A stretch of DNA of 64,000 nucleotides, from the NCBI GenBank assembly GCA_030704615.1, contig CM060732.1:29698001-29762000 (forward strand). The letters run 5' to 3'. Under the pieces are notes generated by a model. It ran no database searches. It saw only the letters and a list, made by a program, of their open reading frames with translations, and was not told the DNA's origin. The position numbers were made by a program, and so were the translations under genes. Below, piece after piece: positions 14,001 to 64,000 of the stretch (the stretch's first letter is position 1; every line of letters starts with the position of its first letter). Source of the stretch: Takakia lepidozioides. Its lineage: Eukaryota; Plantae; Bryophyta.

Positions 14001-14081
14001 AGCTTTACAGACAATATATCTTCCATCGCACGAACCAAGTGATGGAGCTGCAGGATCTGGCATGGCAGTTAGTGAGCATGA

Positions 14082-16710: not shown

Positions 16711-18618
16711 GGCTGAAATGTGCGCACTTGTTTTCCGGGGGTGGGGGGGGGGGGGGTGGGTAGCGCAGTCCGAAGAGAGAAAGACAGAGAGGGCTTGAAA
16801 CCGAAGATCGAAGTTGGGATGGAAAAACAGAAATATAGAATGGAAGTGAAATCTGTACGTGCGAAATAACTGACTGGACCGGAGGACCTCGCAATCCAAT
16901 GAAAGGTAAACCGGCTGAACAAAATAAGGTTGAAAGTCTGGAAGATTCGAATGAGCTCAGCTGAACACGATGATTCTCTTGCACTGCAATTACACCAGAC
17001 TACAGAATATGGAAATGAAAGGAAACGGCGTAGAGGAAGATGATGAATCTCAATGAACCTTGAACAGAATCACACCCCACAATGATTTCAAAGAGAAAGA
17101 AGAAACTCGATTTAAACTGCAGAGACTCTTCTCCGAATCCCTTTGCCTCTGTGAAATCATGGGGTAGCTACGTGGCCGCATTCCAAACTTCACAATTTTG
17201 CTTGGGAACTGTCCCCAACAATTTTCATGCCTGAATCTTGGACGCATGCTAACACTTAAGACGCATCTCTGTGAATGCCCTGGCCAGGCTCTCGCGGGAT
17301 GTCACAGAATGCGTAACGCCCTATGGGGACTTGCCTCGAATCTTCACCTGGATAAGCAGCACACTAAAAAATTTCTGGTACGTGCTTTACGTGCCTAACC
17401 ACGCACTTGAGAACCCAATTCAACCACTGCTTTTGACATGTCAGTTTGAAGTCAAGAGTCCCCCAGAGCTATGGGTTCTACCTTCCCATAATCTTTTTCA
17501 CTTGGCCTCTCAATCGCACCATACTGTAAACTGGCCCCAGTGAAGGTTGTTTGAGTTATGTGCATTTGCACCCTTGGGATGTGCTGAGTGCACAATTCAT
17601 CAATGACGTGCAAAATGCTTGACGAGTTTCCAACCCAAAGAACACACACAACCACATCCATACATTTCCTGCAAACATACATATCAATGTGAAGGCCAGT
17701 TAACTCTGCACTCACATTTGAAAGTTGTCCAAAGATAATATGAGATCACCACATCCAAGGATAAGTTAGAGGTGAGGTTAATATCTGGTAGTTCAAAGAG
17801 CATACAACTCTGTGCACAGCTCATCTGATGATGCTCAAAGTAAAGAAGAGGTTCCAAAGTGAAAACAAACCCACCATCACAGAATATTAAGGGAAGTTAC
17901 ACTGAAGAAAAAATTAGAAGGAAGGAAGCAACAAGGAGGGGCTTAATACTTAGAGCGAATACAAAAGAAAACTGAACAAATCAACTGAATCCTCTAGATC
18001 AGTGACCAACCGTTATAGCTCCCCTTGAGTTCATCAGCTCCCAACAGAGGTCAGACTGTTAAATTGCGTCAACAAGGGAACACCTAACCAAGACAGCTAT
18101 TTATAATTCAAATCATGCAAAACTCCAGACTTCACACAGGAGAGAGGGAGAGAGAGAACCTAATTAATGTGAGTGGGCTGAAGAAAGCTCCCCACTTAAC
18201 CTCCCACAAACTGTGTTTACACTGACTGCAAATAATCTGCTTGTCTCCACCAGGATATGATTCCTCCTTTAAAACTGCTGCTCTTAATCACGTCTAGAAA
18301 TTACCAACAAGGCCAAAAATATCATGACTCTTGCTGATAGAATGAAGTGCCCTAAGTTTTTCCTTTTGAGAGAGAAGGAAATTTCTGTATAAACTTCAGT
18401 ATATCAATGACATGATGGTTGTAAATGGGTGGGGAATCCCAACAGTGAGCTCATAGATCTTACTGTGAAAGCGTCATCTCACTTGGAGATAGTAGTGACT
18501 GTCACAAATCCTCTGCAAAGGTTGAAAAACTTGCAATGACCCAGAAAGCGCTGCAGCAGCGGTTAGGGGTTAAACAAACAAAGGGCTACATGGCAATGTG
18601 CAACAGCGAACTAAACTA

Positions 18619-20654
18619 TTAATCCAATGGCGAATCACCCATCCCATTCTCCTCAACGGCTGCCGCCATAAGCTCATCAAACTGATCCGACTTACTAAGG
18701 ACAATCTCCATCTGCACCCACCAAAAAGAAACCACTTTCTGTTATGTTTTCTGCCTCATTCCTGTAGGCAGGTAATCTCTGCAACCCTAACCCTAAGGGA
18801 TGGTATCCATTACAAAACGCAGCCAGGGCAAGTAAACCCCAAAAGTCTCCAAAGTGGATTTTCGAGACCTACCGGGAATTCTTAGAAGACTTGAACTCAT
18901 TTCGCCTTTCACATCTAAGAAAGACCAATTCTCTGCTCTTGGAAGTTGGAACTTGAGCATAACAGTGGTTTGAGATGTTTTTTGCTTTCTCATATACGAT
19001 TGCTTGCTAAATTAGGTATTTCTACTCGAACCTCACCTCTTTCTTCACTTACTATTTCATGACTTCAGCAAATGATGCTAAATTATTCTGCATTTATTTC
19101 TTGATAATCATTAAATGTTTGATGCCCGTAAAAACCCAAAATGAAACCATCATCTTCATGAACCTTTTCCATTTGAAGCCAATTCTACATTGGAAAGAAT
19201 AAACCATAGATGCTGTTTTTGCAGCAGGATGGAAACAGACCTTTGCTTTTTGAACTGGGCCCCCTCTTGATTCATCCCCCATATCGATCGTTGAAGTGCA
19301 AATCTCTGCATTCGCAAAAGTATTAGGCATTATCATGAATCCAATTCCCTTCACCACCATCCTTCTACAATAAAGCGGATGCGTGAGTAGGAGGAGAACT
19401 GAGAGAGGGAGAAGACGTAGAAGAGAGCAAAGTAGAAATGGCGGAAGAACAAGATGCACAGTAGTGGACAAAGTTGAAGAAGAAATAATGAAGGCCAACA
19501 GTGCAACTTACTCTTCTCAATGGCCAGCCCGTTGTTCTTCAGAATCTCCACCACAGTCACCACTGTGGCAATGGCTGCCTTGTGCACAGATCATGCACAT
19601 AATTCCAAGTGAGTCCTTTTGCTTGACAAGTTCACCTCTGTCTCACTCAATCAAGTTCTATGTTGTACCCCTTTTAGGTAAACACTGATGGACTAAGTAA
19701 AAGCACACATTGCCAACCAACTAAGGCCAAGCTTGGTTCCTACATACCACATTCCATCTGCAGTGGATCCTGAAGAAGGACAAGAAGAAGAGACTGAAGG
19801 AAGGAAAGTACGAAGAAGGAAAGAGGGAGAAGAAAAAACTATGGACCCTATAAACTTGAGAAGAACAGTTGGCATATGCAGCCCCTGAGCTTTTTGGCTC
19901 GCATTGTTGGTGTTGTTGCTGGGTTGGGGGGAAGACTTCGGTTCTCTACTGTTTCTTTGGCCTCTTTTGGCAAGTGAAGTGTGTTCTTCCTTCCAAAAAC
20001 TAAACTAAAACAACTTGTGAAGAACTCACCCATTCCGAGTGCAGAGAGCTCCACCTCATCGTACTGCTGCATAAATCTCTGGCACCTCAAAACACCCATT
20101 TCGTCTCATTACAAGAAAGAAACATGTGGCTCGTTCTTCTCAAAAGGACGAAAAAAGACCTAAAATATCAGAGATTCTTGGCTCCCTTGGGATGAGAACT
20201 CTCTCTGTGTCTCTCTCACACACACAGATACGGGAGATCATCAAAACCTGCAGGGCAGATCGTATAATCAAGCAGTGACATCGTCTGCACTGCCGTACCT
20301 CCAGCATTTACCCAAAAGATCTCACTCCCATTCTACGTGAAAACAAATGTTTGGAGCATACACGTTTGAGCATCCTTAACGAGAAACTGAAAGTCCCTCA
20401 ATCTGAAGTCCTGCCTGATAAGAAGGAGCAGGAGGAGAAGGAAATAAGGAGGAAGAAAGAAGAGTGAAAAGAATAAATAGAAGAACATCATTCGGCAACT
20501 AATTTCCTTTTCAAAAGTCAAAACACCACCCTAATGGGGACTGTAGTACCTTTGCAAGATTGACGTAGAAGAATAGAGGCTTCTTAGTATTGGAGACCTG
20601 GATCCTGTTCTTCTTGGGGCCTCCATCAACGTGATCACCATTGCTCTGCTCCAT
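18619..20654 (-). CDS. Alba DNA/RNA-binding protein (short plant type), intact, 5 exons
   Basis: Exons 20654-20550, 20078-20030, 19574-19512, 19305-19241 and 18711-18619; KKNRIQVSNTKKPLFFYVNLAKR...VELSALGMAIATVVTVVEILKNNG...VQKAKMEIVL. Confidence 0.92.
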
Positions 20655-23317
20655 TGAGCTCTGGTGGGCGATGGTGTGCGAGAGCTTTGCAAGAGTTCCA
20701 CGGACGCAAACCGCACAGGCCGCTGATGCCAACCGTCACGTCACCCTCTCGTTGCCTCCCAGGGATGTTCTACTTGAAATTGTCGTTCCTCTGTGGCAGA
20801 TTCTCTGTGGAATTGGCGCTACTCCGGAGATGGATATCATAGGTGCTCTCTTGCCATGCATGTTGAGCACATTCTACCTAGATATCATAATGGAACCTTC
20901 TTTCTGCCACGCCCGAGAGGCACGTTCTATGTGGAGTTGTCGTCCTTATGTTAGCGAGTGGCCGAGGCGGCGCACTGGCCTGCAGATTGCAGCTCTCTCT
21001 ACCTAGCCTAGTGTGTGGGTGCATCCCAACAACTCGTAACAACTCGTAATTTGCTTTGGCTCCAAATTCTGGCCTTTACCGGGGGTCAGATTATATCCCG
21101 TTAAGGTCTGGGGTGGCATCTGCGGAGGATTCTCAGGCCGGGGATGCAGAATGGATTCCAGATGACAGACTCGCCACTCTGTATTCATGGCTTCCAAAAA
21201 GAGAAGCCAAGTAATTAGTTAGATGAGGCCCTGGAGTTGAATGCCAGGGGCCAGCGTGGACCCCCCCTCCCCACCCCCACTCAATCGCCCGCACACTGCG
21301 CGGCACGCCCTCCCGTGCCTCATGTTCCCGCTGCGGGGACATGACACATGCCCTCTCCATCATCCTCGTCCCGCCTCCCATCCTCCTCTCATGCATGGCA
21401 TCGTCCCCATCCCCCTATGCATGCCTTCATCCTCCCCATGCATGCCATTGCATTCCAAGCCTACATGGTATCCCAAGCATACATCATGCCCTCTTTTCTA
21501 AATAATCCTGACATCTATTCAAAGTTTCAAATGGCAAATCTGAAGAAAAGAATGGTCGACGTTGGGATGTATGCCACGCTGTCACATACACTGCCACCCC
21601 GATCGAGGGTTTTGCTCCCCCCATCGTGCATTTCCTCGTACAACGGTTCTCTCCATGCTCTCTCCATGCTCTCCATGCCCAGGATCTCCCAGCAGGATAA
21701 AAGAGTGCGAGGTTCGTGTGGGGATAGCAAAAGAAGACATCAGCAAACTCAGAAAAACCTTGTTTGTGAAAGCATGGCTGGAGTGGTTGAACATGGCAAT
21801 CTTTTGCCCCACCTTCTTTGTAAACTGCAAAGTCATGAGCTACAGACACTGGTACTTTCACACATGCTTCTCTGGATTTTCATTGTTCTCTTCCTCCAAG
21901 TTATACTTTGTTGGTGAGTGAGTTCTGCAATGAACATCTGAAACCCTCACATCTCTGCCACATTCATTTCTTTGTTGTGTTCATGTACTTTCACACACCA
22001 TGACGTGCAATGGAGGTCCCAATGGCATGGACAGATACCTGATGAGAACACAGCTGAAAATTGCATATATCCCTTGGAATCGGGTGGCCAACTTCATTGT
22101 TGGTGAATCCTCCCCGAAGGAGGCCCCATGCACCTTCCTCAGTCATCGACAGAAAGGCATCTCTGTTGGGAGTCTTTAGGGACCACGCATCAATAGTGCC
22201 ATGAACATTACAAGGTATGAATTCCTGTTGAGTATGCCATGATTCATGAAAACGAAATGAATGCTTTAGACTGTAAAGGTTCTGTCCAATCCCACTAGCC
22301 ATACACTTATGCTTTTCATTAGAGCTGTTCTAAAAGGCCACTCATGTTTTTGGCGTAGGTATCACCGCGCCTATGGCCTAGAAGACAATACCGTAAACAT
22401 TGTGGAGGTAACAGAGGCTATGCATGCCAAGAAATGGCGTGCAGGTCCACCCACGAAAAGGGGGAAAAGTGGGGAAGTGGGGCCAGCATCCACAAGAGAA
22501 AAACCCAAACAAATAAGGACTACAAACAACAAAACATGACAAGGCATCAAAAGAGATGCATGTACCGATTTGTTGTCAAACAATGCTACTTGGACCCTGT
22601 TAATATGACAAAGATAGTTTATAATGAGAAACAGCATGTAAATCATGTAAATTTGCCCACATTTTTTGGGGTGCGATTGTGGATCGTCACTCCGCATATA
22701 AGATACCGACTTTGCATGTTGCATTATGGAAATCCTAATGGGTCAGACCGGACTTACATCGTTCTTCATTGTGAACGTCATTGCTCAAGTTTGTTTTATG
22801 AACATCTCAAACTTGAAGGACTTGTTGAGCACCTCCATGATTGCAGTGTGTTACACTCCTCGCTGTCCTTATTTCTGAAGCATCTATGCGGTATATATGT
22901 TTCATTCATTGAATTATTTCATAGTGTTTGCTATGGTACATGTCTTTCCTTATGTTCCATTCATAATTACACAATGGTCGTTGGCTTGTAGGTGCTGAGG
23001 GAATGCATATTAGTTGACGTGGTTGACATATTCCACGTAAACCTGAGGGAAGACATTTGTAGATGTTCACTCATATGCAGTCTGTGCTTGTGACCGGGAG
23101 TTTTTGAGAGGATATTAGCATTTGGTTTTGCTTATTTTTCATGCGAACAACAGAAAGAGAAGGTTCCATTGCTCAGCAGGAACTTTTTGTTCTCTCATTT
23201 TTTAAATTTGTGTTTGTAACTGATGGGTTTGGGGTTTAGCTATCTTGATGGTGGGGGAATTGCATAATTGATTTGCCATTCTACCGAGCGTTTAGCGCAT
23301 CCCGAGCTCCATCACTT

Positions 23318-25065
23318 TGTTATGCGCATACATATCGCTACACAACTACATCGCTGTCCACAACCACACAACACATATGTACATCACACACTAGTCTATC
23401 ACAAGGCTGCCACTAGGCAACAACTAGCCCAGCACTAGTCTGGCATAGCCACTAGTCCACCACAATGATAAATGAATAATAAAGAAGAAGAATACAAGAA
23501 TACAAGCTCTCTCGAGCTCACAAGCTTTGCACATGAAATCAACACTCATATAAAGTCAAGCTAAGTACACCCCGTGCTATGGGGAATCTATATTACAGCG
23601 CCATAGCTAGATGCGGTGAGGTTCAACTCGAGAAAGATGAACCCACCGCGCTTGCCGTGGAGATAACCACGCCAAGTGCCTAAACATACCTTGGCCCCTA
23701 GATTGACATTTGGGCCAATCCCAAATATCAATATATCAAAATCAATTATTTCCTAGCTAGTTTTACACTAGTGGTAAAATAACTTGACAGTTGTCGTGCG
23801 TATACATATCACTATACAACTACATCGATGTCCACAACCACACAACACACATGCACATCACTCACTAGTCTATCACAAGGCTGTCACAAGGCAACAACTA
23901 GTCCAGCACTAGTCTGGCATAACCACTAGTCCACCATAATCGCCTCCCTAGCTGGTGTTAGATCCCTCTAATTCCAGGTAGCCACAAGATGTGATAGTGA
24001 CCGTAGCCTCACTAAGTCCTCCACAACTGTCACTACTATACTCAAACTCGATAGATTAAGAGGTCGGATACAAGAGTAGCCCCATCGTTAGTCGTCATCT
24101 TGTAACCTTTGAACTTGAGCCTAGGGTCTCGTGTATTGACTCCTATGAGCTTGGTCGCCCATGTCTTGTTAGCTGCCACTGGTCATATCCACTACCATTA
24201 TCCCAAGCAATGTGGATATAACTAATCTCCATCAAGAACCTTATCAAGAAGTGGTGTCAAGCATCCCATGTGTCAACCTCTTGAACATCAGTCACATACC
24301 AACATAGTGGCTGTCCATTTGGCAGACCCACACAACATACACCTCAAACCTGAAGGTACCACTACCAAATTTGGGTCAATCTTGCTATCGACATTGGGAA
24401 GGTGACATGGTGCACAATCACGCACATTATCCTTCCAAGTCATGTCATCCCGACCCTCCAAAATCATGACTCCTGAGGGCAACACATCTCGAACCCTCAG
24501 AATAACACCCCATGTAGCCGCAAATAAACATAGTCCCCAGGGTGGAACCTCCCAATATCCTCCACCACGTATAGTGACATACCTCAATGTATCACGGTGT
24601 TATGCAATAGCAAGGTTCTCAAAAGCCATAGGCATGATTTTATTGAATAACTCTACACGCTGATCACATGCACGTACCCACACGTCCGAATTGTCAAGGT
24701 TAAGGACTTGAGCAGTGTCCCTACGAGTGGCTGTAGGCAAATTTGGCTTTCGGCCAAAGAGAAAGAAATATGGTGAGAATGACGTAAGTGATGCTTGCTT
24801 GCTATCTATCAAGGTTTTATCACACAAAGCCTGAAACCCCCCCAAGAACTCTCTCCCTTGGTCCGTGAGTACCTCAGCTGAAGCATCGAATCCGCTAAGC
24901 ACACGATCCAAGAATGCATACGCAGCCCCTCACTAGCCTGAGTCAGGCAATGGAACCAACTCAATCCACTTGGAGAAGTGTTCCACCATCACCAACACAT
25001 ATTTGTGGTGGCGCATCGTCAATGACAACGGTCCTGCGAAGTCAAAACTCCACCTGTAGCCCAAC
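23318..25065 (-). mobile_element. Ty3/Gypsy element Y, 3' part: decayed integrase and PHD, PPT, then A-B-A terminal repeats
   Basis: Integrase and PHD homologous to 35020-36070 with many stops; PPT at 23941-23952; A 23938-23792, B 23789-23466, A 23464-23318. Confidence 0.88.
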
Positions 25066-25421
25066 TGTCAAGTTAAATAAGCACAGTGTGAAACTAACTA
25101 GAATAAAGCTAGTTATTTATATTTAACACTTGGATTTAGGTCAAGTGTTAAATCAGGTGTCAAGTTTATTTTGACACCTGAACCGTCTTATCTTCTCAAG
25201 AGCATCAGTCGCGCAGCTCATCTCTCTCGAGTTGAGCCTGCACGACCGAGCTCCTGCATCGTTTAGGACTGAGTGTGCTTATGATGGGAGTATAGGTTGT
25301 TGTGGGGTGGAGTCCCCATAGCTTGGGGTGCCCCTGACTCGACTTCTGTTTTAACGAGTGATAGCGATGGATTTCATGTTGTTTCTGGTGTGAACAGTGT
25401 GTCTCTTAGCTTGTTCTATCA
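25066..25421 (+). repeat. 5' terminal repeat (segment B) of element X
   Basis: TG...CA; last 54 bp identical to 36363-36416; homologous to Y segment B. Confidence 0.8.
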
Positions 25422-25436
25422 CTCGAGAGAGATGAG
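25422..25436 (+). promoter_or_regulatory. Putative self-priming primer-binding site
   Basis: CTCGAGAGAGATGAG immediately after the LTR CA; exact reverse complement of 25217-25231. Confidence 0.7.
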
Positions 25437-26479
25437 TTTGCATCTGTGAGTGCAGTGAGCTTAATTAGTTTTTTTAGCACTTGTGGGTTTTGTGTGAGAG
25501 AGAAACACAAGGGTGCAATGGCAAGTTAGGCTCTGTGTGTTGAAAGCGGAACACGAAAGTGCATGGGTATTCTCCCTTTATAACGGTCACTTGAGCGGCA
25601 GATTGAGAGCCGAGCATGGTGAAACGATCAGCATTATTGTTGTCTCGCAAGGCTGGGATGCAAGCCTTCATTGTCTTGGTGGTTAGAAGCGGAGGTGCAG
25701 CTGGTTACGCGAGTAGGTGGACCGTGGTCTTCGACTTCAGCTGCAGAGATAAAAGTACCATGCTAGGTAATTCCTGAGCAGACTGATGGTTTCAGACCTA
25801 CACTAGTGAGCAGCCAGGTGTTGGACTGGTTGATGGGCTCATGTCTACAAGTCGTCGTGCCATGTTATATCGGTATTCGATGACAAACGATTTGGTGAAG
25901 TTGTTCATGGCATATATCATGGTGTGCAATCAGTAAAGGCCGAGTTGAGAAGTTGGCTGGCTATCGTGGTTTTCTGGTCAGCGAGCAGGGACAGCTGGCA
26001 TGAAGGCAGATTGTGCCGTAGTTTGGCTTTCATGTGGAATAGTTACAGCAGAACCGGTGGGAATATTTGTAGTCAATAAGATCAACAAGCAATGAGGCTT
26101 GGTGATTATGCTTGAGGAATTCGATCTTGGACTTGGACGGGTCTGTAATAATTTTTTAAAAAAAACACATGATGAACTGCCAAGTGGCGATGGTGCTGTC
26201 CTCGATTAGCTGTGGATTGCCAATAGGACAAGGAGAGCAGATAGGGTGATGAAGGGGTGCAGACAACGACCCCTAGTTCCATCAAGCTTGGTTAAGGTCT
26301 CCAGGCCCTCTTTTGCATCCACAACGTGTGGCTAGAGCCCATAAGCTTGACTATAGCTGATGTTTTGTTTAGAAGATATGGCTCGTAGCCTGCAAAAACC
26401 AAATAACATTGCCATCCACCACTGGGACTGCATGCTAGAAAGCCATGGAGGCGATGGAACCTCCGTGTAGTTGCCAGTG

Positions 26480-26880
26480 GCAGAAGAGGTTGAGGGAGAA
26501 GCCATGAAGTCCCGTCAGCCACGGTAGTTTGATCATCATCCTTCAACAAGTCGCTACATTCAGTTTCAGGCACTGCCAGCCAAAGTTGTTTACGCGGGCT
26601 CTTTTTACACCTTCGGACACTCAAAGAAAGGAGTGACTGATACCAGCTCATGCCGACAGGCAAGTGAGTTGGCTGAATGGATACTTGTGTCGCCTGAAAC
26701 GCAAAGTGCAGCTACATCGTCCTTACAATTGACAACGGCTTGAGCTAGCCCACACACCTCGCACTCTCCACACATGCCAGCTTGTTTATGCCATGCCCTT
26801 GCCATCGCAACCTACACACAAAAATGCTGGCATCTGCCCTGCAGTACATAGCCATGCTTGACGCATGACAAGACGTGTCT
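26480..26880 (-). pseudogene. CONSTANS-like (two B-box) gene remnant inside element X
   Basis: Across frameshifts: [31 protein letters not shown]...[48 protein letters not shown], then SWLLPQP (26487-26507). Confidence 0.82.
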
Positions 26881-29029
26881 GTGGTAGCCAGGCTTCCTGA
26901 AGGAGGTAGAAGGACGCCGTGCACGTTTGAGGACAGACAATCCCTTGCACAGCAACTCCCGAAGTTGAAGATTTCTCCAAAGAACGAGCACAATGGCCAT
27001 AGTTACCAAAACGTCTGGTACAGTTGTAACGACCATGCTTGCAAGATTGCAATCGGATTTAACGAACAGTTCGGATGAACTGACTCCCTTGTCATTCCTT
27101 CCAGGATTCTTGCTGTGAGTGGATCTTCACATTCTATAAGGGAGGCGGACGGAGTGGATTGTAGCCCAAGATATTTTCGTGCTGGGAGCTCAAAATGTTG
27201 TTTTATAGTGGAGAATGCTAGAATTCGCAGGGAACCATGGACAGGGAACCAAGACGATTATTGTAATAGATTTTTTCATTTGAATGACATATATTATTGT
27301 GAAGAAGAGCCTTTTGGCCATAACTTTGTCATACAAAGGCTGTTTACCTCAAATTTGCGCGGTACCTGCAAATTGTGGAAATCTACATATTCAGACCTGT
27401 TTTAGTTTTCTGGACTCTGCTAAAATATCTATGGAATTTTTTTGAGTGTAGTGTGTGGATGTTATAAAGATCCACAACTTTGTTTCAGCTAGAACCTGTT
27501 GTGGTCTACATGAGACACAATTTGTGGATGTCCTCCTTGTATGGCTGGGGGCAATGAGGACGTAATTGAAGGGCAGGTCTCTTCTCTTAGCCTGTGCACA
27601 CACTGAGACATTTATGTTTCTCTCAGGAACTCAGACTTTGCTTGAGTGGAGAGCAGTTGGACGAGTGATTGCATACTGGGAGTCAGGCATTGCAATAGAC
27701 CAAACTGCTGTAGTTGGCGTTGAGGGCCTCAATATTGCTTTGGCCAGTCAAAACTCTGTTGGAGCAAGCAGTTCTGCTGCTGTAGGTGAATACCAAAGTG
27801 GGTGAAAGCTAGGCTTGGAACACAGCCAAGACAGCCCCCGGGACCAAGGTGTTCACCCACAATCCGTGGTGTACTGGAGCTAGGAGCAGGAGCTGCACAA
27901 GTTGGCAGTCAGACATGGTTGCAGTCGGATACGCTCTTCCCGAGGCAACCACGAGCGGGGGTTCATTAGCAATAACAATTTGTTTTGCTTGAAGGAGATG
28001 CAGTCATTCGCAATGGGACACCCGCAACCGTGTCAAAGCTTTCGAGTTGAGAGACTATCGACCCTACCTTTGTTTTCCTTTAGTGTTTCAGTTGAGCGGG
28101 AGTGGGGAGTATTGCTTTGTCTCTACCTGGCAGAAAGAGGAGGAGGGTTGGTTAGAGCGAGCTACTGTAGCTTTGGACATGTTAGGTGCGCAGGGTGGCA
28201 GGTTCTGGAATAGATATCCTCTACACCTTACCATCACGCAGAGCGAGGCCTTTGAGAAAGTCCTGGAAGTTAGAGGCATAGATCAGGATTAAGATCTTGC
28301 TTGGGCGGACTTCCTTTCTTCCCTCCATCTTTGTACTATTTCATTACTTGTACTCGTAGTTGCCAAAGCCTCTCTGGTGGAGGCCAGTCAGTCCGGGGTT
28401 TTGGGCTGGGATATTCTGCTTGGCACGATCAGCATTGCAGCTGGATTTTGGTGTGTGGGTGTTGATGTTTTTTTGATTTCTTGTGTTTGGATCCCCCCTA
28501 CACCTGCATGCTTGACTCTGTGCGCCATGTTGGTTTTGTGTGGTCGCCTTGCTTCTAGGGATTAGGCCGGATTTGATCACCGTCAATCCTAGGTATGTTG
28601 TCGGTGGTGGGCTGGAGTGATGACCAGCCAGACCCAGTGTTTCTTTTATGGTGAGACTGGGTTGATGACCAGCCAACCATAGAGTTCTTGCGGTGGATGC
28701 AGGTGTAGTGTGCCCGAGTCCACTGGGATATGACCCTTAAACTGCAACAGGTGCCTACCCGTTCACTATTAGAATTATATAGAGCCTTGTATGTCACGTG
28801 GGGAGGTGCACATTGTGAGTGTCATCACGGAGTTACCCAGGGGTTCTGAGGGAGTACGCTACAGGCAGTAGCAGTGAGAGTGGGTTTCACCATGCGAGTG
28901 TAGTTTCAGACCACCTTCACCTCCACCCTCCAACTATGCAAACGAGTCAAACACAACTCGGAGGCTTCATCAACGGTGTGCAGTTTCATTTGCCATTGTT
29001 GTGGGACGACATGGAGGAGATGTATGGAG

Positions 29030-29990
29030 CTACCAGGGGCCTCGTAGGTACTCTGGAGCTGTGGGCACAATCGGTTGGATGACTTTATCCAGGAGCTTCG
29101 ACAATGGTGTGATTTGCAGGCAGATGCGCAATCCACAGCTATTCACCCATTCATGGCGTGGAAGGGACTGTTCCAGCCTTTGGAGGCTCGCCTATGGACG
29201 ATTACCACGAGTTTCAGGCGAGGACATGAAGCAGAGAATTGAGGAGTGGAGGATGTATTGGTCACTTGACTACGTCTCCATTACTCGATGCACGACGCGA
29301 CCAGTAGCTGCATCAGCGTAACAATATCTCCAACTGCCAGCACTAATAGTGGAACAAGTAGTGCCGGTACTTCTGCAGGTGGACCTATTTCAAAAAGGTG
29401 CTACTCTCCTCCTGCCACGACTACAACACATGTGGCCTAGATTCACCCGGTGGTGAGTTCTTCCAGGAGTTGCGGAGGAACTACCAAGGTGTACGGACTG
29501 AGAAGCTGCGAAGTTTTGCAATACTTCCAGCGCAAACCAGAGAGCCTGCGAGAGGCGTCATTCTATGAGGCGCTTGATCAGTGTGACCCAAGGGTTACTG
29601 AAGCTCAGGCAATCCAGTTTTGGTCTGGATTTTGGACAAGGAGCTCAGAGAAGGGTGCGAGATGCAACCCTGTTACAAGCACAGCCCAACCCCACATTAG
29701 CAGATGTGTTTTGGGCTGGCTGAGCGGATTGAGCTCAACATGGTGGAGGAGCGAGTTGTTTACCATTGGATTTGTAAGGACATGCCTGCATGAGGTGTAG
29801 CTGCCAGCCCCACAGGCACAAGGGACTGCCAACAGTGTTGTCAGGGGGCAAGGTTTCCCACCCAAGTTCCATGGAGCTTACAGGGGACCTCAGGTGCAGA
29901 GGCCCGTGGCATCTTTTGCAGGCCAACATCATCCAGGGGGATATGTTGGACATGTGGAGTACCCATGTCAAGAGAGATTGCCCAGAGATT
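29030..29990 (+). pseudogene. Decayed gag of element X
   Basis: Frameshifted RPRRYSG..LDDFIQE..NWCD-like capsid region; zinc knuckle remnant CWTCGVP-HVKRDCP at ~29944-29983. Confidence 0.6.
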
Positions 29991-30999
29991 GGCAAAAGGC
30001 CGCACACAGCACAGCCTGCACAGTTGCGTGTGGGCATTGTTGCAGAGTATGGGCATGAAGATGCCCGTGTCATGACTTGTGCATCCTTAGTTGCGCCCAG
30101 GCCAGTTCCAAGGGAACAATGGTGGCCGGGGCGAGCCCAGAGAAGACGAGGTGGTCGGTGCACGAGTGCAGGCCAAGGCAAGCTCAACATGGCCAGGACG
30201 CGGAGGTCACGTGTCTTGACCAAGGCCGGCCAAGCCGGCTTCATCAGCAGCTAGAGCAAAGCTCGCTGCCATGGATACAATTCAGGCGTACCGGCTCCCA
30301 AGCGGATGGTCCACCTCCTACGCCTAAGGGAGGAGATATGGGAGGCAATGGATTCATGTGCGAGGGCAGCACTACCACTAGTGCAGGTGAAGTCTGCTAC
30401 CAAGCCGTGACCGAGGAGCAGCACGAGTTCCTGAGCCAAAATGGTCAGAGGTGGAATTGGATCCACAGCGTGGGGATGACAAGCCGTCAGGCAATGCTTC
30501 CTCAGTCATTCACATTGGCGAGACTGTGTCGACGCCATCGATTGCACCTAGTTCGCCTACTGTTACCGAGGCGGAGGTTACATGCCATTGTGGGAGAACT
30601 ACCACGTGCGCACTGACACCCTGCTATCAAGGCTATACAACCGGTGTGTTTTGGGGGCAGCCACCTCTAGTGTCAAAGCCCCACTGTTTTCGGCAACCAT
30701 GATTGCGACGCCGGGGGTAAGCCAGCTGCAGGTGTTCAACTAGCAGCAACACTCTGTGAGAGTGGGGAGGTCACTTCACTTGTCTTCTCGGAGTTACTGA
30801 AGGTGTAGTGGCAGAGGGTATCCTCAGATTTGAGGGTCAAGACTGCCACGGCTGGGACCTGGCAAGTACACCAGCTACCAGGTGTGACGGAGCTGCCAGC
30901 TAGGCCAGCCTTTGAGCGCGCCATGGTACACCTAGTTGTCGTGTTTAGACAACCAGGATGGGCATTTTCCTCTTTGAGTGGACACGCAGTCAGAAGTAC

Positions 31000-31350
31000 C
31001 GGCCACTGTGGTCTTGTTGGACCCGGGGGCTCAGCCACTGATTTTGGGCAGGCTGCTATTGCAGGTTTGGGCCTCATGGAGGCAGATATTGAGCCTTCTT
31101 CTTTCCAGATACAGACATCTCTGGGAGGATCATAGCAGGCTCGGGGCATGACACGGCGTGAGTTGGTCATTGGACTACAAGCAGATCATCCTGTAGATGG
31201 CTCAGTGATGCAGCCCAAGGCCATTGTGACAGACGCGGTCTTCTTACGATGTCCTCTCGTTGGTGGGGTAGTTTATATCCCATGGGCTTCACCCTGCTTT
31301 TTGGAGGAGTCAGCATCCTACACGGCACTAGAAGAAATGGCATCAGGGTG
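31000..31350 (+). pseudogene. Decayed aspartic protease of element X
   Basis: VLLDPGAQPLILG at ~31011-31049, a degenerate LLD(S/T)GA motif. Confidence 0.6.
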
Positions 31351-31726
31351 GTCGTCGTGCACAGCTCCCTGTGACATTCATTGGGGTATTGTGGCTGCCC
31401 ACCGGGCAAGATGCCAACACTAGCCCCTTTACAGCTGCAGTAGTTGGCCGAGAGTGCTGGAAGGCAATGCCCATGCAGAGGAGTTCCCACCCTCCAGCAG
31501 AGCAGGATGACATGCATGGTATGTCGGAGTTACCTGCCATGGTGCTCACCTCCATTGTGGGGTACAAGCAAGGATTTGCAAAGCAGGTTGCTGATCGAGA
31601 CGGGTTCAACAACCTGGGTAAGGCTTTTTAATACCATCAGGAGAGGAGGAGAGTGCGGGTATTGCACCAGGACCACCTCAGTTGTCACCATTGGATATCA
31701 CACCTATTGTGTCATTATATGGATAA

Positions 31727-32650
31727 GGCATTTGCCTTCTGGACTTGTTTGGCGTGATCAGCAACCGGATGCCTGCTTGTGCTAACGTAGGTGTGGCGGG
31801 TAGGCATTACCTGTATGTGGAGAGGGATGAGACTGCACGACGCGTCTCACTGCGCCATGTGCTCATTGGTACAGCAGTACCCTGACTTGTTTGCCTGGTG
31901 TCTGCAGTTTCGTGTACCAACAAGGCCTTGCCAATGCAAACATTTCCTTGTTGGGGGGGGCGCAGGATTTGGAGCAGTTTGGCTCCTTGATCTGATAGTG
32001 CGGTTGGCCGCCAAAGCATTCATCAACCGGGCATGGCAATGGATTGTGAGACTCAAAGACGGTCTGCTTTGGGAGATGGTGCGGGTTTTGCGCCACTTGC
32101 AAGCTTCATCAAGCGGTATCTCCAGCATACATCTTGGAGAATGTGCCACTAATGGGTGATTCTCGGGCCAGTGGCATCAAGTCCGGTCGTGGCTTGGGGC
32201 AGCAGTGTTGCTGGATGCAGCTGCAGTGGGGTCACGTGCTCATCGTCCACGCTTTTGGTGGACTAACTTGATGCCACCCCGCCTGCTCAGCGTGCACAGC
32301 GGCCAGCACACCTCACCGTGGATGGCATTTTGGACATATGGAGGCTGTCTCAACGTGTGAGACACGATGACCGTTCGCCTTTGGCAGTGGTCAACAGGGT
32401 GGGTCAACCACGAGCAACATTACCTACACTGCTCAGCTTCCCATCCCATGCTTTTCGGGATGGTGTACCTGGCCTCTTGTGGGATAGCCAGTTGCAACAG
32501 TTAGTGGAGCCTAATGCCGACGAGCGAGAGCGGGCTATGGGATTTTCCACTGGGACCACGGTGGTGCCTTCTCTTTCTGAGGCATCACGTCGTCAGGTGT
32601 TGGGGCAAGCAATGGATCTCAATTGCTTGACATGGATTATCAACTTGGCT
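31727..32650 (+). pseudogene. C5 cytosine DNA methyltransferase domain within Pol (decayed)
   Basis: Motifs in order: I ICLLDLFG (31730), II YLYVERD (31808), IV DLIV-GWP (catalytic PC eroded, ~31990-32012), VI YILENVP (ENV 32137-32145), VIII GSRAHRPRFWWTNL (~32229-32270), IX ERERAMGF (32522), X LGQAMD (32600). Confidence 0.85.
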
Positions 32651-33106
32651 ATGGCTGAGCAATGTAGAGTGCGGAGTGCACTTCCCTTGATGGTCTCTCT
32701 GCCTACCGAGACGGTACAGGCAGCGAGTGGGGGCGAGCCGGTGAGGACCACGGGGTGTAGACATCCATGGCACACGTGGGAGGTGCTCGAGGTTCAGAGG
32801 GAGTTGGCAGCCAAGGCAGCTGTGATGGATGAGGTTGGGGATTCTTCTCGGGATGAGGAGGTTCTCAATGATGAGATGATGGGGCAGGATGAGGCCTTGT
32901 CATTGACTGAGCAGGAATGGAGTACTGCTCAGGAGGTTACAGCATAGCAACCACGGGACGCGTCCTCTACCTCTAAGCCCACTGGACTTAAGGTTGCAGT
33001 TACGGAGGACAATTGGGAGCCTGACATTGGACCCATTGTCACCGGAGGAGAGAGACGACGTATACGGCGGTTCCTGAGGGCTTACAGGAATTGCTTTGCC
33101 TTCAGT

Positions 33107-36072
33107 TTGAAGGTCTTGGGAGCACTGAAGGGTCAAGAGATCCGTATTGAGTTGGCCACTGACACGCCAATCTTTCGGAGACCCTATAGATACAGTGACA
33201 TGGAGAGGTCTTTGAATCAGATGAGGACTCAAGATCTCTGGGAGGCAGGTTTGGTGGAGCTCTCTGGTGGAGAGTATGCTTCAGCCACAGTGATGCCAGC
33301 CAAGAAGGATATCTATGGCAATTGGACGGAGAGACGTATGTGCGGTGATTACCGGCCTGTAAATCGTCAGACCAAGTCCGATAGGTATGCCATGCCGACA
33401 CCAGAGGAGATCTTTGATGCCATTGGGCATTCCAAGGTCTTTAGCACGTTGGATTTACGATCCGGATATCACCAGTTGCCGATCAAAGAGGCGGATAAGC
33501 AAAAGACGACATTCTGGGGGATCAATGAGCACGGAAAGGATTGCCTATACCAGTGGCGGTTCTTACCATTTGGGCTTAAAAACGCTCCCGCTCAGTTTCA
33601 AAGAGTCATGGACAGGATTATAGCAGAGCTGGAGTTTGCTCGATGCTACATAGATGACATCATCATCTTTAGTGCTACAGTGGAGGAGCATGAGAGACAC
33701 CTTCAGGGGGTATTTGAGCGCTTGAGGACGCACGGATTGAAGTTACATCCGGGCAAGTGCAAGTTTTTCCACAACCAGATTGAGTATCTGGGTCACATGA
33801 TATATCCTGGAGGATTGGGGGTACAGCAAACTAAGGTAGAGTCCATTGCACAGGTTCCACGCCCCACGGATGTGAGCCGAGTTTGAGCTTTCATGGGGTT
33901 AGCAAACTATTACAGACGGTTTGTTAAGGGATTTAGTGCCATTGCAAAGGCTCTAACCAAGCTGACCAAGGTGGACCAGGAGTGGCAGTGGGAAGATGAG
34001 CAAGAACAAGCTTTTCAAGAGCTCAAGGCGAGGTTGACCTCGGCGCCCATCTTGAGACGACCTATCAGGGGGCGTCCTTTTCAGCTGCATACAGATTGGA
34101 GCATGTTGGGGCTTGGAGCGGTGCTCACACAGGTGGATGATGAGGGAAGAGAGTTCGTAGTGGCTTATGCCAGCCGCTCGAACAATGCTGCAGAGTCTAA
34201 GTATAGCTCATATGAGGGAGAATGCTTAGCTGCAGTGTGGGCCGTGGCACACTTCAGGTGCTATCTATACAGCAATCTCTTCACCCTTGTCACGGATCAC
34301 CAACCACTCAAGTGGTTGATGGAGTCAGACAAGCTTACGGGGAAGCTTGCACGGTGAGCACTCATCTTTCAAGAGTATGACTTTCAGGTGGTGCATCGAC
34401 CGGGTTTGGTCAATCGCAATGCAGATGGGTTGAGTCGCAATCCATGCACGAGCCAGCAGGATGACACTGGAGCTCGGTGGCATGGTGAGACGGACGAGGA
34501 GATGGTGCCCGGATGGCATGCATCTGCATTTCTGTGTATCTTGGCAACGGAAGGTCAGGTTGGACCTGCAACAGGGATGACTGTAGATCAAGTGTCTGAG
34601 GACCCTGAGGCCAGCAATGAGCAAGGTGGCGCCAAAGATATACATGAGGATTCAGTTGTGTTGGACTACCTCCGCACTGGAGACACTGCAGCCACTGTGA
34701 CTGCCAAGGAGAGGGATCGGATCCTACAACGAGCCAAGAGGTTCAAGTGGGAGGGGACACACCTGCTCCGAGTGTGGGAGGATGGTCAAGTGAGGATTGT
34801 GCCTCACCCAACACAGCGGGCACGGTTAGTGCGGCATGCCCACAAGGAGTTGGGGCATTTTGGGGTGCGACGCACCCATGGCCTACTGCAAGGGCAGTAT
34901 TGGTGGCGTGGTATGCACACAGAGGTGCAACAATTTGTGGCTAGGTGCATGGTGTGTGACAGGGTGCGTGCTTCATTCAACGCCCCTACTCCACAATTGC
35001 ACCCTCTTCCGATCATGGGATTGGGCTACAGGTGGAGTCTTGACTTCGCAGGGCCGTTGCCACTGACCATGCGTCACAACAAGTACGTGTTGGTGATGGT
35101 GGAGCACTTCTCCAAATGGATTGAGTTGGTTCCATTGCCTGATAAGGCTAGTGAGGGAGCTGCGTATGCATTCTTGGATTGTGTCCTTAGCCGATTCAGT
35201 GCTCCAGCTGAGGTACTCACGGACCAAGGGAGAGAGTCCTTGGGGGAGTTTCAGGCTTTGTGTGACAAGGCCTTGATAGACCACCGCACCACTTCTCGGG
35301 ATCATCCTGAGGCCGATGGCTTGGCAGAGAGAGTTGTTCAGACAGTAAAGAGGGGTTTGCGCAAGTATGGCTTGCAAAAGGGACACCTAGGAGATTGGGA
35401 CCTTCAGTTACCCTGGTTAGCCATGGGCTACAGGTTCAGCAAGCAAGCATCACTTGTCTCCTTCTCACCATACTTTCTTCTCTTTGGCCGAGAGCCGGAT
35501 TTGCCTATATCCATTCGCAGAGAAGCTGCTACACTTCTTAATCTTGACGATCCGGACGTGTGGGCATGTGCATGTGAGCAGCGTGCAGAGTTGTTCAAGA
35601 AAGTCATGCCCATGGCTTTCGAGAACCTTGCCATTACACAGCACTGTGATACGTTGAGGTATGCTACCATACGTGGTGGGGGCTATCGTCCTGGGGTTCG
35701 GAGATTCAACCCTGGTGACTATGTCTATCTGCAGCAGACTGCTCCTATGACCTTGGATGTGACTGCAAGACGTGTTATTTTGAGGGTTCGAGAGGTCTTG
35801 CCCTCAGGCGTCTTGGTCTTGGAGGGTCGGGATGGCATAACTTGGAAGGACCATGTGCGTAATTGTGCGCCATGTCACCTTCCGAATGTTGATGGCAGGA
35901 TTGACCCAAACCTGGCAGTGGTATCTGCAAGTTTGAGGTGCATGTTGTGTGGGTCTGCTAAAGGGGCAGCCACCATGCTGGTGTGTGATCGATGCTCTAG
36001 AGGTTGGCAATGGGATGTTTGACTCCACCTCTTGAGATGGTTCCGGATGGGGATTGGTTATGTCCACAATGC
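33107..36072 (+). pseudogene. Pol: reverse transcriptase, RNase H, DDE integrase, C-terminal PHD finger
   Basis: LDLRSGYHQ, PFGLKNAP, YIDD (33647-33658); TDWS...SYEGECLA...TDHQPL; HHCC, LDFAGP, TDQG, GLAER; CxxC...CDRC...CLTPPL..VPDGDWLCPQC. In-frame stops at 33884 and 34355; frameshift near 36009. Confidence 0.95.
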
Positions 36073-36340
36073 ATTGGACAGTGGGAGTGGATACAACCAT
36101 GGAAGGCTAACAAGCAACGCAAGGCCCAGCTACATGAGACCTTGAATACACGAGGTCCTGGCTCAAGTTCACAGATTGCAAGACGGCGATTAACGATGGG
36201 GCTACTCTTGTACCCGGCCTCTTGGTCAATAGAGTTTGAGTACAATAGGGACAGTGATAGAGGACCTAGTACGGCTGTGGCTATTACATCTTGTAGTTAT
36301 CTGGAGTTAGAGGGACCTATCCACCAACTAGGGGGGCGAT

Positions 36341-36503
36341 TGTGGCAGACTACTTTATTGTGTGGATTTCATGTTGTTTCTGGTGTGAACAGTGTGTCTC
36401 TTAGCTTGTTCTATCAATTGTGGCAGACTACTTTATTGTGCATATATGTGTGGTGTGGTTTGGACAGCGATGTAGTTGTGTAGCGATATGTATGCGCACG
36501 ACA
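36341..36503 (+). repeat. 3' terminal repeats of X: A start, B end, AT, A (internally deleted A-B-A)
   Basis: PPT AGGGGGGCG-AT at 36330-36340; 36341-36362 = 36419-36440; 36363-36416 = 25368-25421; the A end matches Y's A end. Confidence 0.8.
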
Positions 36504-37062
36504 CAACCCTATGATGGGTAAATGATGCAATCGTGGCGTAGGGGCGTTGAATGAAGCACGCACCCTGTCACGCACCCTGTCACACACCATGCACCTAGCC
36601 TCGAACTGTTGCACCTCTGTATGCATACCACGCCACCAATACTGCCCTTGTAGTAAAATGCGAGTGCGTCGCACTCCAAAATGCCCCAACTCCTTATGGG
36701 CATGTCGCACTAATCATACACGTTGTGTTGGGTAAAGCACAATCCTCACCCGGCCATCCTCCCACAAAAAGTAAACGTATGACGCCTCCCGAAGGGAACG
36801 TAACTTATAGTATCACTTGATCCCGGAGGGCTATTGCCTTGCAGCAGGAAGGTGGATACCTTTGTGACACACTAGATGGTGGTTTGAACCCAGAACCACA
36901 TCCAACGTGGTATGTGCCCATTACCACTAGGCTACATGCTGGTTGTCCATCCTCCCACACTCGGAGCAGGTGTGCCCCCTCCCACTTAAACTTCTTGGCT
37001 TGTTGCAGGATCCAATCTCTCTCCTTGACAATCACAATGGCTGCCGTGTCTCCAGTACGGAA
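36504..37062 (-). mobile_element. Upstream part of element Y integrase, 5'-truncated and interrupted by a SINE
   Basis: RTGDTAA...FKWEGAHLLRVWEDG / HAHKELGHFG...RASFNAPTPRLHHLPIIGL; continues into 25065. Confidence 0.85.
36767..36946 (-). mobile_element. tRNA-derived SINE (~180 bp)
   Basis: 13-bp TSD CCATCCTCCCACA (36754-36766, 36947-36959); A-box TAGCCTAGTGG, B-box GGTTCAAACC, T-rich 3' end. Confidence 0.8.
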
Positions 37063-40540: not shown

Positions 40541-43500
40541 TTGTACTCATAAGACGTTGTTTGCCGTAGCCTTGTGGCCATTGACCCCGCGCCCAGTTTG
40601 AGCGGGAACAAAAAGGACAGAACCTACCTCTGTCAGGGGCTGACGTTGGTAGTACGACTTACCTTCATATATAGAATTAATCCGGGTTTTCCAGATATCC
40701 TCTAGAAATCCCTTCACACAAGCATCAATCTGCTGTGTGTGATTTGCCCAAAAACTAGGCCTCAGGAGGGCCTGAGCCTCGAGACTTTCAAAGTTGGTAA
40801 ACAGGGGTACAGGCACAATTCCCTTGATAGATTTGAAGAGAGCGTCTCTTTGGTGAGAGAACCCCGGACAGTGTATCAGAAAATGAATACTGTCTTCAGA
40901 TTGCCCACACAACGGGCAATTGCACTCTCCCTTTCCTCTCTGCTTCTGTTTGCTGTTCAAAGGTAGGCTTCCTGCCCTGAGTTTAAATTTCAGTCTAGTG
41001 CCGAGAGTGGGTAGACCCTTGAGGTCATCCAAGATGTCCTCCCCCATGTCACTGACTGGAAACAAGTTCAGGGAAGTTTTCTGCCTAACTTCATTTTCAT
41101 CAGACAATCTCATGGCAACAGACATGGCTTTGGACACTACAGCCTCTAAGTCAGATTTATCCTGCGACTACAATCAAAATTTTCGCTCCTATCAACATCA
41201 ACACTCCTCAGGGTGATTCCTGGGAATTGGTTACTTATGCCAAATCTAGGGCTTCATGTGTAGTTTTTGGGGTGAATCCCAGGATGGACGATGTGTCCTT
41301 TAAAACTACATGCTCTAGCTTAGGCTTGGATTTCATGGCTTAGACATTGGTGATTCAATGGGGCGCTCTAGGAAGACAACCAAGGGCAAGGACTTCAACT
41401 TTTGAGTTTCTAATCGGTTTGATGCTCTGGATGAGGTTGAATCCAAACAGCCAGAAGGACAAGATGCCCCTAAGTGTACGGAACCTGAACGTCCTGAATC
41501 GGAAGGATTTGGTACACTGAATGGTTTACCAATCCTCAAGGTTTACACAAGACGAACAAATTCTATACACGGGGTAATTGTCCCCAAGCCGTCAGATGGA
41601 CAATCTGTCCCTAAGTGTGCAGAGCCTGAACGTCGTGTAACTGAAGGATTTGGTACTCTAAATGGTTTACCAATCCTCAAAGTCTACACAAGACGAGCAA
41701 AATCTATACACGGGGTAATTGTCCCCAAGCAGTCAGATGGACAATCTGTCCCTATGTGTGCGGAGCCTGTGCGTCGTGTAACTGAAGGATTTGGTACCCT
41801 CAATGGTTTACCAATTCTCAAAGTTTACACAAGACGAGCACAATCTACACATGGGGTAACTGTCCCCCCTTTGCAGAACGGTTGGCCGTCCAGGAGCAAT
41901 CACAAGCTACCTAGACGACAAACAATTCACATGCAAAGGGCTGGCTTGCGGCTGGCCACTTTCAACTTCCAACCAAAGGAAACAACTCGAAGTGGGACAA
42001 GTTCTTCGGACTAATGATATTCATATCTGTGCTGGGCAAGAAACATGGGAAGCATCGGATAAACTGGTTGGAGATGTCAATGGTTATAAATCGGCAGGTA
42101 AGATGTGTACTCTCAAGGCAGCCTCTGCCAAACGCGGTCAAAAAGGGGTTGGATGCTTTGTCCGTGATTTCTTGTTTGACAATTGTGAAATTATCAACAA
42201 GGGTTTGAGGTACGAGCATAGTATCTGGCTAAAACTGAATCTGAAGGGCGGCATGAGTACGAAGGACCTCTTTGTGGGTTGTGTTTACATGCCCACAGAG
42301 GGGACCCTTAGTGCTGACGCAGACAAAGCCTTCGAAGATGTAAAGCTGGACTGTGCTTCGTTCCTTGCCAAAGGTCAGGTGGTGCTATTGGGTGACTTCA
42401 ATGCCCGGGTGGGCAAAGGGCTCCATCAGGACAATATCATTGGGCCTTTTGGTGAGGACGAGCTGAATTCTAATGGCAGACGGTTAATTAACTGTCTGGA
42501 AGAGCTTCAGCTTTTGACCTTGAATAACAGGACAAGAGGTGACCAAGTGCAGTGGACTCGTGAGAAATCCCAAACTGGGGAACGTTCCATTGTGGACTAT
42601 ATCATAATGGACAAAAATTTGTTCCCCCAGTGTGCCAATGTGTTGATCGACAGAACTGATATTGGTACCTCTGACCACTTCCTGGTTTGGACTGAGATCA
42701 AAAGGTGTTTTCCCAACACCAAGAGATCTGTGAAACGTTCGATTCGGAAGTGGCGCATAGAAAAATTCCATAATGAGGAGGTCAAGGCTGAGTACGTCCA
42801 GGCCTTGCAAGAGGCTCTCCCTCATTTTGTCCAATCGCTCCAAGAACTTCAGTCTCGCTCTGACAACGCAAGAAATGAAGTCGAAAGAGCAGTGGACTCT
42901 TGGGAGAGTTTCGTTTCCTCCGTGGCTGACAAGATCATTGGGAGGAAACTAATTGTCTGCGGTAGAGCTGTTAATTGGTGGACCAATGAGATTAAACTCA
43001 AGATAGCTGAGAGACGAGCCCTCTATAAAGAGTGCTGCAATTTGAAACCAACAGAGAATTGTGGGCGAGGTACTACCAGCTCCATAAAGATATCAATCAG
43101 CTTGTTAGGTCTCAGAAGAAATTATACTGGGACAAGTTATACAGTGAAATAAACTCAAACCACCATGGTGGTAATGACAAGAAATTCTGGTTGGCCCTTC
43201 AACGTTTGTACAAGCCGAAAAACGGTCAGCAAGTACAAGCGCTGAAGATTACTAAAGGTGCAGTGGTGACTTCATCGGTTGACATTGTCAAAACCTTTGA
43301 AACTCACTACAGTATACTTGGCAGAACTTCTAGGTCTAACAGTGAGGGGTCTTCTGCTGAATGGAGGGACACAGTTGGAAAAACTGTTCCTATGATTCAA
43401 AACAGCCCTGATATATTTCAATGGCTTATAACGCTCCCATTAGTTCTTCTGAGATTGTGGAAGCAATTGAACATTTAAATGGATATAAAGCTGGTGGACC

Positions 43501-59100: not shown

Positions 59101-59138
<38 letters not shown>

Positions 59139-60040: not shown

Positions 60041-60076
<36 letters not shown>

Positions 60077-62326: not shown

Positions 62327-62367
<41 letters not shown>

Positions 62368-63733: not shown

Positions 63734-64000
63734 GCACAACACAACCTCATTACATTCGGGGTCTTCCTGTTTACTGCTCTCTAGGGTTGTTGTCGTCTTT
63801 CCATAATTGATGGTTTCATGTCATGTTTAGGGTTTGTTTTTCATCCAAATACAACACGGCTTCTTGTGGCTTCTTGTCACCCTAAACAGTTTTTCTGGTT
63901 GGTGACTCTCAGTGTGGTTGTCTGCGAAGTTCGGTGCATGTCATTCCTACATCCTTTGCAGGCATCGCCCACAGTCTTTGGGTTAGTGCTAACCTTATTG

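Follow-up and report, generated by a model that had tools for sequence, protein, structure and literature searches.

We analyzed a stretch of 64,000 nucleotides from the bryophyte Takakia lepidozioides (NCBI GenBank assembly GCA_030704615.1, contig CM060732.1, positions 29,698,001 to 29,762,000 of the forward strand), referred to below in its full length as the window. Within a GC-richer block of the window, at 28-36 kb, lies a Ty3/Gypsy element on the plus strand with the domain order gag, protease (PR), DNA methyltransferase (DNMT), reverse transcriptase (RT), RNase H, integrase (INT), and PHD finger, the DNMT being located between the protease and RT (Table 1). Our results indicate that the DNMT stretch is very probably a decayed methyltransferase domain and belongs to a single, dead member of a Ty3/Gypsy family of high copy number in bryophytes.

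Table 1. Features of the element and its methyltransferase remnant, in window coordinates
Feature	Position	Strand	Frame	Evidence or remark
Gag-like region, decayed	29028-30561	+	several	tblastn of Marchantia gag-PR-DNMT proteins P0157, P0160
Aspartic protease region	30674-31300	+		tblastn with C. fissa and Marchantia proteins
DNMT3-type C5 cytosine methyltransferase remnant	31682-32740	+		colinear tblastn to open C. fissa ORF, P0001, P0017, P0106
tblastn segment, motifs I and II	31682-31861		+2	belongs to longer match starting at 30485
tblastn segment, motif IV place and motif VI	31888-32184		+1	
tblastn segment, motif VIII	32064-32294		+3	
tblastn segment, ERERAMGF and LGQAMDLN	32300-32734		+2	
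Motif I, LLDLFGVIS	31736-31762	+		
Motif II, YVERDE	31814-31831	+		
Motif IV place, GWPPKHS	32002-32022	+		catalytic Pro-Cys lost; GWPCQGHS in C. fissa copy
Motif VI, ILENVP	32131-32148	+		E-N-V retained
Motif VIII, AHRPRFWWTN	32238-32267	+		DNMT3A equivalent AHRARYFWGN
Motif IX, ERERAMGF	32522-32545	+		
Motif X, LGQAMDLN	32600-32623	+		
In-frame TAG followed by CAA CCA	32945-32953	+		same place and context in relatives; probable read-through stop
Reverse transcriptase	33086-33883	+		PF00078, 1.5e-33; YIDD at 33647-33658
RNase H	33887-34354	+		PF17919, PF17917 (RNase H 3e-34)
Integrase, H2C2 zinc domain and DDE core	34358-36019	+		PF17921, 1.2e-15; PF00665, 2.7e-12
PHD finger, integrase C terminus	35984-36081	+		PF00628, weak in window piece
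Short direct repeat	36363-36434	+		shared with 25368-25439; possibly relic of terminal repeats

The methyltransferase remnant was delimited by tblastn, with an open reading frame (ORF) of the liverwort Calypogeia fissa (locus L001, 8390-10774; 795 amino acids) as the query and the window as the target. The query covers the window domain colinearly, with E values of 1e-60 and 2e-40, along a frame path of +2, +1, +3, +1, +3, and +2 that involves at least five frame changes. Over these shifting frames, motifs I, II, IV, VI, VIII, IX, and X occur in canonical order. In-frame stops interrupt the remnant at 31724, 31991-31996, 32047, and 32157, and the catalytic cysteine is gone; the window copy is dead. 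A PCQ at 31923-31937 is a chance match in the wrong frame, the true motif IV place being the one listed in Table 1. Comparison with the intact relatives described below confirmed, at the level of homology, that the remnant is a real but broken C5 cytosine methyltransferase domain.

Upstream of the remnant, Marchantia gag-PR-DNMT proteins align colinearly with the window from about 29028, through gag and protease into the DNMT stretch. At the place of the protease active site, the window has LLDPGAQ (31017-31034), in a frame that is shifted, compared with LLDSGAQ in the C. fissa copy. Downstream, the segments 32267-32944, 32948-33883, 33887-34354, and 34358-36019 share one frame and are separated by single stops, TAG (32945), TGA (33884), and TGA (34355). 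The PHD finger is broken in the window by a frame change near 36010-36016, and its match to PF00628 is strong in relatives (1.2e-10 in the second ORF of the Marchantia polymorpha locus L004; also in P0054 and P0106). An earlier reading of this stretch, made from its sequence alone, had proposed a C5 DNA methyltransferase between protease and RT, with motifs I, II, IV, VI, VIII, IX, and X in canonical order and a C-terminal part in frame with RT, RNase H, and INT across single stops, in an inactive copy with indels and an eroded Pro-Cys motif. Our data are in agreement with these points: the domain is colinear with intact, PF00145-positive relatives, all seven motifs were located in the window, and the frame changes, the stops, and GWPPKHS at the motif IV place account for the inactivation.

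To identify these relatives, an exhaustive HMMER search was conducted with the 226-amino acid C-terminal piece (32267-32944). It returned 662 cluster representatives at E ≤ 1e-3, the nearest of them from the liverworts C. fissa and M. polymorpha, and in the more complete relatives PF00145 scores over threshold directly upstream of the matched part. Language-model look-alikes of the same piece, 76 of 100 of which fall in PF00145-marked clusters, were treated as a lead only. The 795-amino acid C. fissa ORF comprises the protease as well as a complete methyltransferase domain, in which LLDLFGG, YVERDE, GWPCQGHS, ILENVP, AHRPRLWWTN, ERAMGF, and LGQVMDLN are read in a single frame; it scores 40.6 bits with PF00145 (cut-off, 22), and Marchantia proteins score 29-35.6 bits.

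The order PR-DNMT-RT-RNaseH-INT was found in C. fissa L001 and in Marchantia L004, L005, L006, and L007, the truncated locus L002 contains PR-DNMT only, and Pfam places the DNMT ahead of RT in the Marchantia proteins P0163 and P0173. Dozens of Marchantia gene models over many chromosomes belong to the family, as do several proteins of C. fissa and proteins of Sphagnum. Nearly open copies exist in Marchantia. In L004 (the Mp_4g09160 locus), 1362 open codons (8749-12834) encoding gag-PR-DNMT are followed by a TAG and then by 1045 open codons (12838-15972) encoding RT-RNaseH-INT-PHD. The upstream frame of the family contains gag (CCHC) and the protease, with a C5 cytosine methyltransferase of DNMT3 type as its last part. 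Split direct repeats of the form A...B-A-B are present in L004 (A, 5826-6122 = 16248-16545; B, 16134-16246 = 16545-16657) and likewise in L005. In L007, the 3' repeats are interrupted by about 6 kb (15023-21071) that are open in all three forward frames, with 2004-2011 codons each, probably a low-complexity or masked insert. Judging from these loci, the DNMT domain is a feature of the family at a constant place rather than a one-off insertion.

The decay of the window copy could be assessed against other copies in the same organism, since approximately 27,000 contig pieces from runs of the same organism map onto window positions 31400-34400. Other copies encode W-P-C-Q at the motif IV place (window 32016), carry C at the 32047 stop of the window, and nearly all have G at 34357, indicating that the lesions of the window are private. 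Across 31400-34400, G in the other copies corresponds to A in the window at 35 places, and C to T at 18, compared with 9 and 11 differences in the reverse direction (window G or C versus A or T), a total bias of 53 versus 20. In the other copies, 13 of the 23 best-supported biased places have a CG or CHG context, which is suggestive of deamination of methylated cytosines as the source of the A/T bias.

We also compared the ratio of nonsynonymous to synonymous substitution (dN/dS) among three Marchantia copies. The values were 0.15-0.29 for the DNMT, 0.16-0.69 for RT, 0.12-0.51 for RNase H, and 0.12-0.47 for INT; between Marchantia and C. fissa, the DNMT value was 0.16-0.19, at saturated dS. 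The DNMT is under purifying selection, similar to that on RT and integrase. Taken together, these comparisons indicate that, in liverworts, the Gypsy-DNMT family is both abundant and under selection; relatives occur in Sphagnum and green algae. The sequence-only reading had pointed to precedents in dinoflagellates and Klebsormidium, which are indeed published (PMC5890265), and had suggested that the lineage persists in a land plant, as the many M. polymorpha and C. fissa copies and the Sphagnum proteins bear out. Analyses along the lines it recommended gave PF00145 matches in the intact relatives and none in window pieces, an intact P-C-Q motif both in the same organism and in C. fissa, and dN/dS values well below 1 for the DNMT, and the one-off insertion it had named as a refutation is itself refuted, six loci from two other species having the domain in the same position.

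The stop codon between DNMT and RT deserves separate consideration. A TAG-CAA at the homologous place was found in five copies from three species (the window, L001, L004, L005, and L007), with the context TAG CAA CCA in the window, L005, and L007, TAG CAA TCA in L001, and TAG CAA CAA in L004. The sequence UAG_CAR_YYA, which four of the five copies match, is the type I read-through motif of plant viruses (PMC3542737). The peptide around the conserved TAG is poorly conserved. Because both place and context are shared by three species, the TAG at 32945 is probably a programmed read-through stop. The two TGA codons are private to the window, L004 having CGT at 33884-33886 and TGG at 34355-34357. 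The proposal of the sequence-only reading that the DNMT was part of one polyprotein with RT, RNase H, and INT therefore stands in part: the conserved TAG, which divides an otherwise open Marchantia element, makes the DNMT the tail of the gag-PR product, joined to RT only via the proposed read-through.

The type of methyltransferase was examined in the relatives. A profile built from 26 aligned domains was searched against solved structures (PDB) at E ≤ 0.01, and its matches were led by DNMT3A (5.6e-24), DNMT3C (1.3e-22), and DNMT3B (2e-21), followed at a distance by the best DRM (3.5e-12), M.HhaI (1e-8), and DNMT2 (1.8e-5); DNMT1 and chromomethylase were absent among the matches at this threshold. 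An AlphaFold model of the C. fissa domain, rather than of the window copy, had a mean predicted local distance difference test score (pLDDT) of 92.1, and all 50 of its 50 best Foldseek matches were DNMT3A, DNMT3B, or DNMT3C, with template modeling (TM) scores of about 0.8 by target length, on catalytic-domain chains. In alignments of the relatives the motif order is non-rearranged, unlike that of DRM. The catalytic cysteine and the Glu and Asn of motif VI are invariant in the 26 sequences, which range from liverworts to green algae, and two motif VIII arginines are nearly invariant across the same set. By profile and modeled fold, the domain is of DNMT3 type, nearest to DNMT3A/B/C. Three homologue searches returned element copies only, with no host DNMT3 and no Klebsormidium sequence among them; in the third, a long gag-PR row dominated the profile, and mostly Marchantia gag and protease fragments were returned. 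The HMMER search and two cluster look-ups likewise contained no Klebsormidium entries.

Most of the long relatives have another domain order, RT-RNaseH-DNMT-(G-patch)-INT-PHD. Elements with RT-RNaseH-DNMT-INT-PHD occur in Haematococcus lacustris, Chlamydomonas eustigma, Chromochloris zofingiensis, and Cymbomonas tetramitiformis, and on many metagenome contigs. In an unrooted tree of 159 DNMT domains, a single branch, with a Shimodaira-Hasegawa-like approximate likelihood ratio (SH-aLRT) support of 99, separates a group of 24 that contains every sequence with the DNMT before RT, including the window and the liverwort copies, from a group of 135 that contains every sequence with the DNMT after RNase H. 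The integrase PHD finger is present in both groups. The simplest reading of this pattern would be one element lineage in green plants in which the DNMT module moved once.

Some features of individual relatives may be recorded here. A G-patch stands between DNMT and integrase in some green-algal relatives, namely L003 (a GCA_025491035.1 contig) and P0106, and in relatives of this type the pol frame begins with RT, after a separate upstream ORF of 950 amino acids. P0169, a 455-amino acid protein from a Candidatus Obscuribacterales bin named "DNA cytosine methyltransferase," falls inside the clade with the DNMT before RT and is probably a eukaryotic transposon fragment binned by mistake.

These data lead us to consider how such an element might operate. 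Read-through of UAG-CAA-YYA would append RT, RNase H, integrase, and the C-terminal PHD finger to gag-PR-DNMT. The DNMT would then be made along with Gag, in Gag-like amounts, and its fusion to RT would be confined to the rarer read-through product. As the Klebsormidium and Symbiodinium work suggests, the enzyme may methylate cytosines de novo on its own cDNA or on new insertions, and the PHD finger could read histone tails at integration. We put forward, as a possible but rather doubtful model, that the DNMT is packaged in virus-like particles at a Gag-like dose and methylates nascent cDNA before PHD-guided integration, serving self-silencing or stealth, and that this still operates in Marchantia.

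Several observations weigh against parts of the interpretation developed so far. None of the ten stop-free window pieces scanned against Pfam matched PF00145, and phmmer returned nothing relevant among solved structures for two window pieces; identification of the window domain consequently rests on its intact relatives. The placement in the DNMT3 clade comes from the ranking of profile and fold matches rather than from a tree with host enzymes. L004 reads CAA CAA rather than CAA YYA after its TAG, and the metagenomic relative P0388 encodes gag-DNMT-RT-RNaseH-INT in one frame without a stop, which means that the TAG is not universal in this architecture and may be a liverwort trait. The missing Pfam and PDB matches of the window pieces are what would be seen if the motifs had matched by chance, or if a fragment of a host DNMT had been inserted in the window copy only. 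We give this explanation practically no weight, considering the tblastn E value of 1e-60 across the domain, the occurrence of this domain in the same position at six loci in two further species, and the very many contig pieces of the same organism that cover the DNMT stretch.

The two remaining alternatives concern the origin and the role of the domain. The bryophyte elements could have acquired their DNMT3 in a capture of their own, separate from those of the Klebsormidium Gypsy-Dnmt3 and the green-algal elements, so that the likeness would reflect convergence and not one lineage. The DNMT does lie at different places in the bryophyte and green-algal architectures, and recurrent capture of DNMTs is documented (PMC5890265). 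However, the DNMTs of the two architectures are mutually closest, with 30-41% identity to the C. fissa domain as against about 21% to DNMT3A, and form sister groups split by the one well-supported branch; the two architectures also have the PHD on the integrase in common, and the A...B-A-B repeats of Marchantia match those reported for the Klebsormidium element (PMC5890265). We consider independent capture unlikely. A conserved DNMT could, on the other hand, be something other than a DNA self-methylase, acting on another substrate (RNA or host loci) or serving as a non-catalytic regulator or decoy of host DNMT3 in the manner of DNMT3L. Selection on the domain shows its importance and not its role, and the domain is without the PWWP and ADD targeting domains of animal DNMT3, both of which leave room for such a function. 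Regulators of the DNMT3L type have lost residues of the catalytic motifs, whereas the invariant cysteine, Glu, and Asn and the nearly invariant motif VIII arginines of the element DNMTs point to a working enzyme. Related retrotransposon DNMTs were found to methylate CG de novo in the work on Klebsormidium and Symbiodinium (PMC5890265). This alternative, too, seems improbable to us. The reading that we prefer is that of a single family with a DNMT3-type domain under selection, and self-methylation of the element is retained as its tentative function.

The surroundings of the window copy are those of a nest of insertions. Two more fragments of the same family, from the integrase and PHD region, lie on the minus strand at 23927-25064 and 36504-37061; their identity with 34671-36352 is 78-90%, and they lie beside the main copy or interrupt it. 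The direct repeat of the window amounts to 54-72 bases only (25368-25439/36363-36434), the 3' end of the element being disrupted by another inverted fragment. The 5' leader (25000-29100), which follows the putative 5' repeat and precedes gag, gave no protein-level match in the fetched Marchantia and C. fissa loci, and a B-box ORF in it was accordingly dropped as a candidate family feature. Farther downstream, a 141-base unit is repeated in three tandem copies with 88% matches (41443-41867), and a long satellite array occupies 57678-63734; its units are about 116 bases long, every one containing the inverted repeat CAGTGTGCGTTGACGCACACTG, and higher-order periods are present at about 230 and 347.

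Why a retrotransposon should carry an enzyme whose normal use is to silence it is puzzling, and the question has so far been addressed only in algae that are difficult to manipulate. In M. polymorpha, where the family is abundant, transformation and knock-outs are established and methylomes have been published, so that in this genetic model the role and target DNA of a transposon-borne DNMT3 become directly testable. The probable leaky-stop design on the Gag side offers a hypothesis on enzyme dosage, and the green-algal sister architecture one on movement of a module within an element. The window copy itself has no function, and its value is that of a pointer to a tractable system. The sole bryophyte in the survey of de Mendoza et al. 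(2018) was Physcomitrella (PMC5890265), later papers name a "streptophyte" Gypsy-DNMT3 only through citing that study, and our literature search found no paper on liverwort or moss Gypsy-DNMT3 elements. Elements of this kind are already known from Klebsormidium.

The closest described system is Gypsy-Dnmt3 of Klebsormidium nitens (KnitGypsy-Dnmt3), which was compared by its published description only, a text from which the domain order is absent (PMC5890265). It is likewise of the Ty3/Gypsy type, and its coding region includes a DNMT3-type domain that is not rearranged. Purifying selection was reported for it (Ka/Ks < 0.2) in agreement with the 0.15-0.29 of the Marchantia DNMT, and its DIRS-like repeats, odd for a Gypsy element, resemble the split repeats of Marchantia L004 and L005 (PMC5890265). 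The hosts differ, the present elements being from land plants (liverworts, with related Sphagnum proteins), and the PHD finger and the read-through stop are unmentioned in the text of that paper (PMC5890265). The same study found that the retrotransposon DNMTs of Klebsormidium and Symbiodinium methylated CG de novo (PMC5890265). SymbioDIRS-Dnmt3 and SymbioLINE-DNMT of Symbiodinium are also retrotransposon-borne C5 methyltransferases, and SymbioDIRS-Dnmt3 has two domain orders within one lineage, as do the bryophyte and green-algal elements; they differ in class (tyrosine recombinase DIRS and LINE) and in host.

The catalytic domain of animal DNMT3A/3B/3C is the best profile and fold match of the element domain and has the same non-rearranged motif order from I to X. 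However, identity is only about 21%, motif IV is P-C-Q in the elements and P-C-N in animal DNMT3, the elements have a longer spacing between motifs VIII and IX, and the PWWP and ADD domains are present only in the animal proteins. The type I leaky stop of tobamoviruses and the gag-UAG-pol of gammaretroviruses similarly set the polymerase off from an abundant upstream product by an in-frame UAG, whereas the bryophyte elements, in which read-through is proposed from conservation only, have a protease and a methyltransferase upstream of the stop. Finally, the green-algal and the bryophyte elements share RT and integrase of the Gypsy type, the PHD finger at the integrase end, and a homologous DNMT, the green-algal domains being 30-41% identical to that of C. 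fissa; the green-algal DNMT lies between RNase H and integrase, in the pol frame, whereas that of the bryophyte elements follows the protease in the gag-side frame.

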